Origin: Octopus sinensis
Taxonomy: Eukaryota
Assembly: GCF_006345805.1 (NCBI RefSeq)
Contig: NC_043012.1
Location: forward strand, 41,292,001 to 41,356,000
Direction of reading: 5' to 3'
Length of the DNA: 64,000 nucleotides
Each line of letters begins with the position of its first letter. Within the stretch, counting starts at the first letter, position 1. Below, one piece after another: positions 5,829 through 24,666 of the stretch. The notes below the pieces were generated by a model that did no database searches, was not told the origin of the DNA, and saw nothing but the letters and a program-made list of their open reading frames with translations. Position numbers and translations under genes: made by a program.

Positions 5829-5929
5829 TCAAAGCGTCCTTTGGCAAATACGTCGGCAGAATCGCTGATGTTTGCCAGTCTTGCGACAAATTCTGCAAAA
5901 CTTCCGAATGTTTTTCTGCAAAATTCCAA
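5829..5929 (-). CDS. Probable terminal coding exon: [33 protein letters not shown]
   Basis: Strong acceptor ttctttttcctgtttcag at 5930; the phase-1 frame required by exon 3 gives a 4-Cys basic tail and TGA. The other two frames are also open, so an intervening exon cannot be excluded. Confidence 0.6.
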
Positions 5930-8900
5930 CTGAAACAGGAAAAAGAATGCCATGTACACATACTAACGAACATGCATAAATGCATACGTACAGACATATA
6001 TGAGGGGAGGGGCTGGAATGTTCCTGGCTTTAAGGGTGTCGTTAAAGGCCTGGCTTGGTGTTGGGTTTCCAGTCAAGCCTTTTGCGAGGCCCTTAGCGAT
6101 ATCAGCTTAGAAAAAACTGAAGCACCGCCGCAATATGTTTGCGAATGTGAGAAGGGGAATATGTTGAATGAAATCATAATTAACTGACCTTCCTCGATTT
6201 TCTTTTACTCAAAGCCAGGAATTTCGTAGATACAAACATACGTACAAACACACATACGAGCATATGTGTGTGTGTGTGTGTGTGTACGAACTAGTGCGCG
6301 AGTGAGTGCGTAATGAGTAGTATAAGATATGTATTGAGAGAATAGTGCAGCTATCACAGTAAGCTCTTCTTGTGGACTCGGCTATCAGTCCTCGTAGTAA
6401 TCAATTATAAAATAGTAGACTATCAAGTATTCTTGTAACTGAAAATCCTGAAGATCCCAGCGATAAATTTATTCAGTGAGGAGAATATTAAAACGTCAAA
6501 TGAGGTCTGTGAGGTGAAGGTATATTTCTTCACTGAACCAATAAATTTCTAAAGGATTACGGCCGTTTTGTAACTTTGTGTACGTTCTTTTAATTTCAGT
6601 ATGCAAGAAATTATGGGTACACGTTTGCATAAGTATGTTCGTATATAAATATTTCTTTACTACCCACAAGGGGCTAAACATAGAGGGGACAAACAAGGAC
6701 AGACAAAGGGATTAAGTCGATTACATAGACCCCAGCGCGAAACTGGTACTTTATTTATCGACCCAGAAGGGATGAAAGGCAAAGTCGACCTCGGCGGAAT
6801 TTGAACTCAGAACGTAACGGCAGACGAAATACGGCTAGCATTTCGTCCGGCGTGCTAACGTTTCTGTCAGTTCGTATATATATATTACACATACACACAT
6901 GCATCTATATATAATACATCAAGTACAGGACATCACCAACGAGTGAAAAATATGTAAACACATACTGAGATTACGGGACAAAATACCAAAAGGAGTCTAA
7001 TCCCTCCTCAGGTGTCCACTGTTAATTACTTCCTATACAATCATTATACTGGACAATTGTGCGTTCACAAATTAATGCAAAGAAAGAAAGCAAGTTTGTC
7101 AGGCGTAGGAGTGGCTGTGTGGTAAGTAGCTTGCTTTCCAACCACATGGTTCTGGGTTCAGTCCCACTGCAGGGCATCTTGGGCAAGTGTCTTCTACTAT
7201 AGCCTCGGGCCGACCAAAGCCTTGTGAATGGATTTGGTAGACGGAAACTGAAAGAAGCCTGTCGTATATATATATATATATGTGTGTGTGTGTGTGTTTG
7301 TCCTCCCCCCTATCGCTTGACAACCGATGCTGGCATGTTTACGTCCCTGTAACTTAGCGGTTCGGCAAAAAAACCCCGATAGAATAAGTACTAGGCATAA
7401 GTACTAGGGTCGATTTGCTCGACTAAAGGCGGTGCTCCAGCATGGCCGCAGTCAAATGACTGAAACAAGTAAAGAGATCACCGAAATTGGTGATGTAACC
7501 ATGATGCCTATTCGTCAGGCTTCCACACAGTCTCCGTCTACCATATTTACTCACAATGCATTGAGCAACCCGCGGCTACAGTAGAAGTCGCTTGCCCCAA
7601 TGCCCCGAGTATTGTGACTGAACTGGAAACCACGTGACAGCCAATCGAGCTTCCTTCAGCCAAAAGCCATGCGTTCGGCCATTTTCATAGAGGTACAAAC
7701 ACTTGAAATTGGTGAAGGCCAGAAGTTCACTAAACCAACATACAAACCTATGAGTGGGTCTCTGAAAAGTTCCCGGTTTTGGGGAAAAGAAAATCGAGGA
7801 AGGTCAATTAATTAGGATTTTATTCATCAAGGCGCAGGAGTGGCTGTTTGGTAAGTAGCTTGCTAACCAACCACATGGTTCCGGGTTCAGTCCCACTGCG
7901 TGGCATCTTGGGCAAGTGTCTTCTGCTATAGCCCCGGGCCGACCAATGCCTTGTGAGTGGATTTGGTAGACGGAAACTGAAAGAAGCCTGTCGTATATAT
8001 GTATATATATATAAGTGTGTGTGAATATGTTTGTGTGTCTGTGTTTGTTCCCCTAGCATTGCTTGACAACCGATGCTGGTGTGTTTACGTCCCCGTCACT
8101 TAGCGGTTCGGCAAAAGAGACCGATAGAATAAGTACTGGGCTTACAAAGAATAAGTCCCGGGGTCGAGTTGCTCGACTAAAGGCGGTGCTCCAGCATGGC
8201 CGCAGTCAAATGACTGAAACAAGTAAAAAAAAAAATTTTTTTAAATAAAAAAGAGAGTAATATCCCCCTCTCAGATTCACACACTCATTGGACTTCCAAC
8301 CACGCCTTTCATGACACCCTTAAACCTTTCTCTCTCTCTCTCTTTTTCTCTCTCTTTCACACACACACACCACACACACACACACACACACACACGCACA
8401 CTCAATGCATATGGTATGAAATTAATAATTAAACTCACAGTTACCAATTCTTGGTCTTTTCTGACGAATATTTTTCCGTTTTTGATTCGAATTTTTGTGC
8501 ATTATTTTCGCTTTTGACGTTCGCTGCCAAAATTTTTTGGCTCCTCTGGATTTGTTTTCTATAAGAATTCGATTGAGAATCGATTTGTATCGCGATTTTA
8601 TTTGTTCAAATCTTTGGCAACGTCCACCGTGTTTTAAGGTAAAGCGTGTATTTGACCTGTTAGTATAAAATAATCAATATGTAGTACTATCTATCTATCC
8701 ATCTATCTATCTATCCATCTATCTATCTATCTATCTATCTATCTATCTATCTATCTATCTATCTATCTATCTATCTATCTATCTATGTATTATAAATGTG
8801 AAAATCAAGTATATATATATATAGATATATATATATATATATTATATATATATATATATATATATAGGATCATGAGTGTAATACTGTATTATTCTGTTTG

Positions 8901-23900: not shown

Positions 23901-24666
23901 CATCATCATCATCATCAAGCCAACAAGCTGGCATAATCGTTAGCACGTCGGGCAAAATGCGTAGCGATATTTCGTCCAGCCTTTACGTTCTGTGTTCAAA
24001 TTCCGCCTGGGTCGACTTTGCCTTTCATCCTTTCAGAATCGATGAAATAAGTACCAGTTACACACTGGTGTCGATGTAATCGACTAGCCCCTCCCCCATA
24101 ATTCCGGTCTTGTGCCTATAGTAGAAAGGATTATTATTATTATTATTATTATTATTATTATTATTATTATTATTATTATTCTATGTTTGACTTTTGCTTT
24201 ACATTTGTACAAGTTGGCTCCAAGTCTCACCCAGAGACCTCAAGAGACAACAAGTTGGAAGTTCATGTTGGTGTTATGCCTAGGGTGCCATATATTTGGT
24301 TTTGTACTTAGTGTTGTACTAGTGAATGCCTAAAAAACCATACTATATTAAAAACCATATTATTATTATTATTATTATTATTATTATTATTATTATTATT
24401 ATTATTGTTGTTGTTGTTGTTATCGTCAATGCAGCGTAACTGAGTGATGCGAATTAAATGGAATAGTTAAACAAAGACGACCTCGGCAGAATTTGAACTC
24501 AGAACATAAAGACAGACGAAATACATCTAAGCATTTCGCACAGCTTGCTAACGATTCTGCCAGCTCCTCGCTGCCATCACCATAATATGATATTCACAAA
24601 TCCAATGCCATACTCACCAGCAGCTAACAAGGCAAAAACTAACATACACTGGCGACTGGCTTTCAT
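5829..24666 (-). CDS. Secreted Kazal-domain plus mucin-like repeat protein, spliced CDS join(24666-24618, 21471-21348, 20366-15175, 5929-5829), about 1821 aa
   Basis: All four exons have canonical splice sites and chain in consistent phases (1,2,1). Total 5466 nt = 1822 codons including stop. The Kazal domain is completed across the exon 2/3 junction. Confidence 0.8.
5998..6228 (+). mobile_element. Mariner-derived non-autonomous element copy
   Basis: Same family as 33388; LEKLK.R.N....RRGEYVE* remnant. Confidence 0.65.
6650..6873 (-). mobile_element. SINE-A copy
   Basis: Near-consensus reverse copy. Confidence 0.85.
7101..7474 (+). mobile_element. tRNA-derived SINE family B (internal microsatellite, two-part body)
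   Basis: GGAGTGGCTGTGTGGTAAG A box, GGGTTCAGTCCC B box, cttgggcaagtgtc core, ...gcagtcaaatgactgaaacaag tail. Confidence 0.85.
7749..8322 (-). mobile_element. Mariner-derived element split by a SINE-B insertion (7831-about 8255)
   Basis: The halves ...ggattttattca and atatccccctctcagattcacacac rejoin to the reverse of the 33388 family. Confidence 0.6.
7831..8227 (+). mobile_element. Full-length SINE-B copy
   Basis: Same motifs as the 7101 copy. Confidence 0.88.
9350..9811. mobile_element. Two SINE-A copies tail-to-tail (decayed plus copy about 9350-9545; minus copy 9588-9811)
   Basis: Family-A head and core motifs in opposite orientations. Confidence 0.7.
10812..11315 (-). mobile_element. 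Non-autonomous Helitron-like element
   Basis: Minus-strand 3' end CCCGAGCAACGCCGGG hairpin followed by ...CTAG|T; 5' end runs into TATATAAAACTG and a (TA)n tract. Confidence 0.7.
12200..12432 (-). mobile_element. Decayed tRNA-derived SINE of a further family
   Basis: Reverse head (gtggaggctcaatg; ggtttcgattcc) and ccctggaaggacgatagtcc segment. Confidence 0.55.
12613..13411 (-). mobile_element. Head-to-tail tetramer of tRNA-derived SINE family A, period 191 bp
   Basis: Four near-identical units; B box GAGTTCAAATTCC in each; full 5' head only in the rightmost unit. Confidence 0.9.
13412..14358. repeat. (AAT)n/(GAT)n microsatellite field hosting the REL element
   Basis: Direct reading of the sequence. 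Confidence 0.95.
13593..14080 (+). mobile_element. 5'-truncated R4/Dong-like non-LTR retrotransposon 3' end (restriction-like endonuclease) within an (AAT)n tract
   Basis: ORF 13630-13983 with [31 protein letters not shown]; 3' UTR; (AAT)n on both sides. Confidence 0.88.
14565..14990 (+). mobile_element. SINE-B copy in intron 3
   Basis: Family-B body and tail; supplies the spurious last codons of the 1752-aa ORF. Confidence 0.8.
15175..20366 (-). CDS. Coding exon 3 (5192 nt): Kazal Cys VI ([13 protein letters not shown]), basic linker, then a long Thr/Ser/Pro/Glu-rich mucin-like repeat region ending ...[10 protein letters not shown]
   Basis: The frame stays open upstream of the tracked ORF (20185) to acceptor tttgttttaaacag at 20367; donor CCAG|gtaaga at 15174; degenerate 15-20 aa repeats. 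Confidence 0.9.
20620..21100 (+). mobile_element. Cluster of decayed SINE-A copies in intron 2 of the CDS chain (between exons 2 and 3)
   Basis: Degenerate heads (aaggcagcgaattgacagaa, aaggcggtgagttggtagaa) and cores. Confidence 0.6.
21348..21471 (-). CDS. Coding exon 2: [41 protein letters not shown], Kazal domain Cys I-V
   Basis: Acceptor ttttttttccctacttag, donor TT|gtaagt; classic [13 protein letters not shown] Kazal motif; phase 1 to phase 2. Confidence 0.93.
21757..22140. repeat. Foldback element: about 150-bp imperfect inverted arms around an 80-bp spacer
   Basis: gttcacaggtgacctaaac...ttgttaaagagga pairs with tcctccttaacaa...gtttagatcacctgtgaac. Confidence 0.85.
23917..24128 (+). 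mobile_element. SINE-A copy between (ATC)n and (ATT)n tracts
   Basis: Head, B box and core motifs. Confidence 0.85.
24618..24666 (-). CDS. Coding exon 1: [16 protein letters not shown], start of signal peptide (exon begins at 24694 with 28 nt of UTR)
   Basis: Minus-strand acceptor ttttcctcttctttttag at 24695, ATG at 24666, donor CTG|gtgagt; basic N-terminus followed by a hydrophobic core. Confidence 0.85.

Follow-up and report, generated by a model that had tools for sequence, protein, structure and literature searches.

Mucins are defined operationally by a Ser plus Thr content of at least 20-25% and a Pro content of at least 5%, by at least four tandem repeats and by a Pro/Thr/Ser-rich (PTS) region that makes up at least one third of the protein (Lang et al.; Syed et al. 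2008, PMC2515642). Invertebrate mucins often do without the VWD, CK and SEA domains, and 9 of 23 characterised proteins contain no conserved domain (PMC2515642). Such orphan mucins, for example the Drosophila Muc/Mur proteins and the salivary glue Sgs proteins, consist of a signal peptide and a dominant PTS repeat region and are poorly conserved and lineage-specific (PMC2515642). Cysteines occur within the PTS repeats of 3 of the 23 mucins, and the authors proposed that they organise chain-chain interactions (PMC2515642). Among molluscs, Kazal is one of the commonest domains of limpet adhesive-mucus proteins (PMC7333891), and the mucins reported from octopus skin-mucus proteomics are limited to automatically named mucin-4-like and mucin-19-like proteins. 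Here we describe a gene on the minus strand of a 64,000-nucleotide stretch of Octopus sinensis DNA (contig NC_043012.1 of assembly GCF_006345805.1, positions 41,292,001 to 41,356,000; hereafter the window), which probably encodes a secreted mucin-type glycoprotein with one Kazal module at its front and a proposed role in an extracellular coat.

The window is AT-rich (GC ~26-43%) and abundant in microsatellites and dispersed repeats, with the look of an animal genome. Its minus strand contains a 1752-amino-acid (aa) ATG-to-stop open reading frame (ORF) at 14927-20185, the Ser/Thr-rich frame that an earlier note on this DNA had reported. That note had proposed that splicing extends the ORF to a protein with a signal peptide and a complete Kazal domain at the N-terminus, an acidic Ser/Thr-rich rod, no transmembrane segment and probably a four-Cys, Arg/Lys-rich tail at the C-terminus. 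All four pairs of exon coordinates turned out to be exact, with consensus splice sites and fitting phases, and the joined four-exon coding sequence of 5466 nucleotides (nt) encodes 1821 aa with no internal stop. The exons are as follows, a slash marking the exon boundary at each splice site; use of the fourth is a candidate reading.

24666-24618, minus strand: coding part of exon 1; ATG at 24666; 16 residues plus one base; donor CTG/GTGAGT, phase 1; signal-peptide-like start
21471-21348, minus strand: exon 2; acceptor ...CCCTACTTAG/ (also written TTTTTTCCCTACTTAG/); donor /GTAAGT, phase 2; end of the signal peptide and Kazal Cys1-Cys5
20366-15175, minus strand: exon 3 (5192 nt); acceptor ...TTTTAAACAG/ (also written TTGTTTTAAACAG/); donor CAG/GTAAGA, phase 1; Kazal Cys6, basic linker, PTS rod and basic C-terminal stretch
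5929-5829, minus strand: candidate exon 4; acceptor TTTTTCCTGTTTCAG/, right phase; 33 codons and TGA; net charge +11, four Cys (CxxC ... CxxxC)

In the head-plus-rod gene model predicted from exons 1 to 3 we have very high confidence. The stop-free frame of the large ORF comprises 1819 codons (14930-20386, minus strand), and the runner-up stop-free run in the window 380 codons. The two alternative frames of the same stretch contain 76 and 139 stops, and from base composition the probability of 1819 open codons is estimated at ~e^-110. Tandem arrays span ~2 kb of the 5.4-kb open frame, and the remaining 3.4 kb is non-repetitive and stop-free too. Because the tandem repeats account for only part of its openness, the large ORF is coding sequence, and together with the upstream exons it is a protein-coding gene, apparently unannotated.

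The repeat copies themselves weigh against this reading. Codon-position diversity among the repeat units is 0.20, 0.24 and 0.23, equal at all three positions, and the copies are thus without a codon-position signature of constraint, the third position showing no excess of differences. The opposite strand of the repeats, moreover, yields ORFs of up to 349 aa, and no homologue was found in the protein collections searched. These observations would suit a non-functional locus: stop-free repeats would have kept the long ORF open by accident, or it would belong to a decaying pseudogene, and the Kazal exon would be an unrelated relic. Such a locus is nevertheless extremely improbable, given a non-repetitive part that is free of stops while the other frames hold 76-139, an intact Kazal domain completed exactly by the opening 13 codons of exon 3, and splice signals and phases that are all compatible.

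Exons 1 to 3 are joined through consensus splice sites, with compatible phases (1, then 2) and an open frame. If exon 2 were left unspliced, translation would reach a TAA two codons past the fifth Kazal cysteine (TGC TTG TAA), and the frame of exon 3 opens merely 20 nt 5' of its acceptor. An alternative acceptor of exon 2 (...CCTTACAG/ at 21461) was rejected, with a stop after 25 codons. Exon 1 is unique in sequence within the window and has a G at -3 relative to its ATG. Candidates that combine an ATG and a hydrophobic stretch with a phase-1 donor were sought over the 12.5 kb preceding exon 2, and all but exon 1 consist of microsatellite. Upstream of it lies a promoter-like pair of motifs:

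24790..24826, minus strand: putative core promoter, assigned by sequence inference; TATA-like ATAAATA at 24826-24820 and initiator-like TCAGTT at 24795-24790

The two motifs are canonically spaced and are located ~127 nt upstream of ATG 24666, and the pattern WATAAAWR-N22-27-TCAGTY occurs a single time in the window, both strands included. No ATG was found between the initiator-like motif and ATG 24666. A polypyrimidine tract followed by TAG (TTTTTAG/) resembles an acceptor at ~24696 on the minus strand, 30 nt upstream of the ATG and in a frame open to it, which counts against exon 1 as the first coding exon; the site may mark another 5' exon junction or have arisen by chance. Were an upstream exon to join there in frame, it would add domains to the N-terminus, and the hydrophobic stretch would lie inside the protein or act as a signal anchor. 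We consider this improbable in view of the canonically spaced TATA-like box and initiator with no ATG following them, the G at -3, the lack of any further coding-looking exon seen upstream, and the classic layout of the n-, h- and c-regions directly ahead of a disulfide-rich extracellular domain.

This layout was read by eye in residues 1-22 (MKASRQ, then 11 residues, then PYSNG), with likely signal cleavage after SNG22, where Ser occupies -3 and Gly -1. With exon 1 as the first coding exon, the protein is most probably secreted. Behind the signal peptide follow the two parts of the head:

21348-21445 + 20327-20366, minus strand: Kazal module, residues 26-71; crosses from exon 2 into exon 3, whose first 13 codons contribute the last strand and Cys6
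20135..20326, minus strand: basic linker, residues 72-135; no Pfam family match

In the joined protein, Pfam Kazal_2 (PF07648) matches with 45.1 bits (E=1.1e-11, cutoff 22.8) over positions 1-48 of the 48-position profile, and Kazal_1 (PF00050) with 35.2 bits against a cutoff of 21. Exons 1 and 2 alone give 37.5 bits for Kazal_2 and cover positions 1-33 only. The exon 2/3 junction is therefore supported, since the Kazal domain is completed only by joining exon 3. The cysteines are arranged as C27-PEI-C31-NHTRHEV-C39 ... C50-FMNRAD-C57-x13-C71, with the spacings C2-x7-C3 and C3-x6-Y-x3-C4, and the Kazal motif is the single one in six frames of the window.

The closest solved relatives of the module are agrin, follistatin and FSTL3, followed by sea-anemone elastase inhibitor and rhodniin. 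The Kazal modules most like the one described here are those of agrin and follistatin, which together with FSTL and testican form a group of matrix proteins containing Kazal modules. The likeness includes the spacing C4-x6-C5 and a ...GRC end, with which the C-terminus of the octopus module can be aligned. Agrin, too, is a secreted matrix protein that pairs Kazal modules with Ser/Thr-rich glycosylated stretches, and the best length-matched database matches are agrin-like. However, agrin comprises nine Kazal/follistatin modules in addition to NtA, laminin-EGF, SEA, EGF and laminin-G domains, whereas by Pfam a single Kazal module and none of these others were found here. Since the similarity is limited to the 46-residue module, the mucin gene is not an agrin orthologue.

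The same six-Cys signature is shared by Kazal inhibitors such as ovomucoid, SPINK1, rhodniin, sea-anemone elastase inhibitor and crustacean multi-Kazal proteins, of which rhodniin and the elastase inhibitor match significantly. The short C1-x3-C2 spacing seen here is typical of invertebrate 'non-classical' Kazal domains. These inhibitors, in contrast to the octopus protein, are small or multi-Kazal proteins and have no mucin rod. In the classical alignment of the Kazal loop, P1 is the second residue after Cys2. We therefore presume that P1 is His33 and that Asn32-His-Thr34 constitutes an N-glycosylation sequon within the reactive loop, at P2-P1', both atypical for a potent inhibitor. The Asn32-His-Thr sequon aligns with the N-I-T of the first FS domain of follistatin, a site which we take to be glycosylated. 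A His at P1 and a sequon in the loop would argue against a classical tight-binding inhibitor; for this reason a role as protease inhibitor is not assured, and the module may inhibit weakly or in an unusual manner, or may serve as a binding knob that has no inhibitory activity.

The mature head, residues 23-135, has an isoelectric point (pI) of 10.5. An AlphaFold single-sequence model of the head reached a predicted local distance difference test score (pLDDT) of 37 and was unusable. Within the linker, a K-R-A-R motif was read by eye (QIKRARE, residues 111-116; 20215-20226, minus strand). It could be a cleavage site of the proprotein-convertase type, which would release the Kazal head.

The remainder of exon 3 encodes the rod and a short basic end:

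15260..20134, minus strand: acidic PTS (mucin-type) rod, residues 136-1760; 1,625 residues, 632 Ser/Thr, ~9% Pro, pI 4.4, 34 Cys
17604-18665 (18.6 copies) and 18683-19024 (6.1 copies), minus strand: tandem arrays with a 57-nt (19-residue) period
19461-19833, minus strand: tandem array with a 60-nt period, 6.3 copies
15670-15836, minus strand: tandem array with a 45-nt period, 3.7 copies
15175..15259, minus strand: basic end of exon 3, its last 28 residues; a switch from acidic to basic, helix-prone sequence ahead of the splice donor, with a helix predicted for residues 23-40 of a 77-residue query

With 39% Ser plus Thr, the rod makes up ~89% of the protein, in which T, S and P amount to 21%, 15% and 9% overall. 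The net charge over residues 136-1790 is -96, and the last 61 residues, candidate tail included, have a pI of 11.7. The whole protein contains 28 N-x-S/T sequons, mostly in its last third, and has a predicted mass of ~190 kDa before glycosylation. There are more than 30 tandem units in the rod. Its cysteines, about one per 48 residues (35 over residues 136-1790, Cys1765 included), are found mostly at a single position of the repeat, in alternation with Tyr and Ser. Outside the signal the highest 19-residue Kyte-Doolittle mean is 0.67, and the spliced model thus has no membrane-like segment. The signal-peptide-like start, the complete Kazal domain, the acidic rod and the missing transmembrane segment of the earlier note are hence all borne out.

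By composition, by arrays of 18.6, 6.1, 6.3 and 3.7 copies and by a rod of 1625 out of 1821 residues, the protein falls within the operational definition of a mucin. A Pfam search of the joined protein, covering head, rod and tail, returned Kazal and nothing else, with no VWD, CK or SEA. Like the orphan mucins, the octopus protein has a dominant PTS repeat region, here behind a putative signal peptide, lacks VWD, CK and SEA and appears lineage-specific, and some orphan mucins likewise have Cys in their PTS repeats. The accessory domains of the orphan mucins are mostly peritrophin-A chitin-binding, EGF-like or VWC domains, and neither a Kazal head nor a basic Cys hairpin tail is reported for any mucin in the set of PMC2515642. 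Gel-forming mucins (MUC2, MUC5AC and MUC5B) have in common with this protein a giant central PTS exon and, presumably, secretion and a disulfide-dependent network. They carry, however, VWD-C8-TIL and a C-terminal cystine knot, none of which was detected by Pfam in the protein or in eight ORF segments downstream of it. Nor does the spliced protein show the SEA domain or the transmembrane-like segment of a membrane-tethered mucin. The earlier note had made much of the missing VWD/CK and SEA/transmembrane ends; their absence holds for the protein and the eight downstream segments, and it is less striking than was implied, being common in invertebrate mucins.

In frog integumentary mucins of the FIM-A.1 type, small Cys-rich trefoil (P) modules flank a PTS repeat core, and these proteins belong to the skin secretion. 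The design of disulfide-rich end knobs on an O-glycosylated repeat rod would be shared with the octopus protein, whereas the knobs of the frog mucins are trefoil and not Kazal modules and no sequence relationship is known. The octopus protein is best placed in a known, very heterogeneous class, as a putative lineage-specific secreted mucin whose set of accessory modules is new.

The 3' end of the gene depends on the fate of the exon 3 donor at 15175, a full consensus site (CAG/GTAAGA). If it is not used, the ORF continues into the following stretch:

14927..15174, minus strand: continuation of the ORF by read-through, with 82 further open codons; contains a trinucleotide microsatellite at 15085-15126 and a dispersed repeat at 14600-14987

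Two stretches of the read-through sequence reach Kyte-Doolittle means of 2.5-2.6, with an Arg run after or beside them. A membrane-tethered mucin could be read from this: the ORF would run to the stop at 14927, and a hydrophobic segment followed by the Arg run would serve as a stop-transfer anchor. This is very improbable. The segment is encoded by microsatellite and dispersed repeat that recur in the window in non-coding contexts, the unused donor would be one of full consensus, Pfam detects no SEA domain, and no polyadenylation (poly(A)) signal was found within 1.9 kb after the read-through stop. The compound (ATG)n(AGG)n microsatellite, which gives the Met run and the Arg run, is present at 15040-15126 and again in non-coding sequence at 23795-23915 (minus strand), with a similar one at 61003-61182 (plus strand). 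Because a recurrent microsatellite is followed here by a dispersed repeat, the read-through stretch is, on its composition, intronic and a look-alike of a membrane anchor. Splicing at 15175 is very likely, because the read-through consists of microsatellite and dispersed repeat and has no poly(A) signal within that 1.9 kb.

As to the partner of this donor, 13 pseudo-terminal exons of phase 1 with a decent acceptor were counted downstream, and the acceptor of candidate exon 4 is among the three best of them. Most of the others are microsatellite or repeat, and exon 4 is the sole non-repeat candidate with a strong acceptor in the correct phase. It is situated in a unique-sequence island of ~270 bp between a microsatellite and a dispersed repeat and prolongs the switch to basic, helix-prone sequence seen in the last residues of exon 3. 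When it was set beside comparable pseudo-exons drawn from both strands and every phase, exon 4 was the only one of 74 to have at least four Cys together with a net charge of at least +8. AlphaFold, run without an alignment, modelled the tail as a helix-turn-helix whose two helices carry CxxC and CxxxC, respectively (pLDDT of the block ~71-86). A join of exon 3 to 5929-5829, adding a basic helical hairpin with four Cys, would be the best candidate in the window; we put it forward tentatively, on the strength of splice-site quality and composition, and hold it to be slightly short of an even chance. The four-Cys Arg/Lys-rich tail claimed before is thus present in the DNA as described (33 residues, +11, four Cys), as a candidate exon.

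Several points weigh against it. An open run of 33 codons after an AG is not rare, and the notable features of exon 4 were picked after the fact. The first AATAAA after exon 4 stands at 4312, 1.5 kb downstream. The tail has no database match, neither in Pfam nor in a protein-collection search with the C-terminal 201 residues, where nothing was returned even at E<=10. It is a serious prospect, if not quite a probable one, that head and rod are as described and that another 3' exon, within the 15 kb or beyond the window and possibly encoding other domains, completes the gene, in which case the frame at 5929-5829 would be open by chance and its acceptor deceptive. The other twelve phase-1 pseudo-terminal exons have adequate acceptors, and the downstream sequence in the window amounts to 15 kb only, which adds to the unmatched tail and the distant poly(A) signal. 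What tells against such a different end is that most of the alternative exons are repetitive, whereas exon 4 combines one of the three best acceptors with unique sequence, a basic, helix-prone continuation of exon 3 and a Cys content and charge seen once in 74. In addition, the eight non-repeat minus-strand ORF segments in the 15 kb from the donor to the window edge contain no Pfam domain, a search that short exons could escape.

Searches for relatives returned no orthologue from the protein collections, a result that tells against the gene model. With residues 1-200, a word-indexed, length-matched search found only crab agrin-like proteins, through the Kazal module. In a HMMER search of 1.84 billion representatives with the same residues, the top 150 matches were multi-Kazal proteins without exception, and no alignment went past about residue 100; since these 150 places are saturated by summed Kazal scores, a weak relative matching the linker alone would go unseen below ~87 bits. 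None of three gene models (spliced, read-through and ORF only) is present, by exact look-up, in a collection of 15 billion proteins, and a metagenome scan with the non-repetitive start of exon 3 gave no relative. In the literature, nothing relevant was found on a Kazal-mucin protein in octopus or other cephalopods. The lineage-specific glycoprotein proposed in the earlier note is in line with these results, as no orthologue or characterised relative emerged from the protein-collection and metagenome searches.

Repeats and transposon remnants surround the gene. A core of ~95-105 bp that resembles a short interspersed nuclear element (SINE) has at least 17 occurrences in the window, among them the following:

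24472-24566, 4502-4596, 13310-13404, 50974-51072, 6780-6873, 52462-52556 and others: copies of the SINE-like core
12666-13362, plus strand: tandem array of the SINE-like core, 191-bp unit, 3.6 copies, 94% identity

The core seems to resemble an abundant octopus SINE; no literature match to the repeat sequence was found. A second dispersed family includes the repeat at 14600-14987 directly downstream of exon 3 and recurs at 7102-7338, 7807-8223 (including 7914-8223), 28200-28452, 31781-31933 and elsewhere. Proteins of coral, shrimp and Lingula are ~60% identical to a transposon-derived ORF at 13630-13983 (plus strand), which belongs to no Pfam family and has its best match, at 84%, on a contig of the European Nucleotide Archive (ENA); a diverged second copy is located at 62782-63051 (plus strand), near the window end. 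The 175-codon open frame at 62055-62579 (minus strand) shows a CxxC...C...C pattern and no significant Pfam match, and is possibly a decayed transposon protein. Rfam and tRNA scans of the window found nothing.

From these features a mechanism can be proposed. The protein would enter the secretory pathway, where dense O-glycosylation would turn the rod into an extended, polyanionic bottle-brush. The 34 Cys scattered along the rod would allow intermolecular disulfide links, and the basic ends, which the earlier note had rightly set against the acidic rod (head pI 10.5, rod pI 4.4, last 61 residues pI 11.7), would dock electrostatically on acidic rods or other polyanions. According to this proposal, a network could form without VWD or CK, because rod disulfides and electrostatic end links would take their place. 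The Kazal module may block or bind a protease and so protect the secretion, or, like the modules of agrin and follistatin, it may serve as a small and stable knob for binding. As its most likely role, the protein would form a protective, lubricating or adhesive extracellular coat. It weighs against this scheme that we infer all three of its elements, O-glycosylation, disulfide networking and electrostatic self-association. An extended version is unlikely and should be read as speculation: a self-complementary 'polyampholyte' mucin, in which a cationic, disulfide-stabilised head and a hairpin tail would dock on the polyanionic rods of neighbouring molecules and be locked by the repeat cysteines into a gel free of VWD and CK, and which would represent a family of one molluscan lineage that is absent from annotations.

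Mucins combined with small Cys modules, invertebrate mucins poor in domains and molluscan mucus with Kazal domains have all been described before, and no long-standing question is opened by this locus. Mucin genes are often missed or truncated in annotation on account of their giant repetitive exons and fast evolution, and the locus is a concrete example: its informative parts, i.e., signal peptide, Kazal module and possible tail, are encoded in tiny exons 1-9 kb away from a 'featureless' ORF. The repeat of Met and Arg runs illustrates a further pitfall for ORF-based annotation, as reading through from a real exon into it mimics a membrane segment with a stop-transfer signal. Mucins are central to barrier function, lubrication and adhesion in soft-bodied marine animals, and the protein is of some interest for research on bio-adhesives and mucus. 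Should it prove abundant in a secretion, it could be considered as a structural component with a mode of cross-linking unlike that of vertebrate gel-forming mucins and with a built-in protease-binding module.

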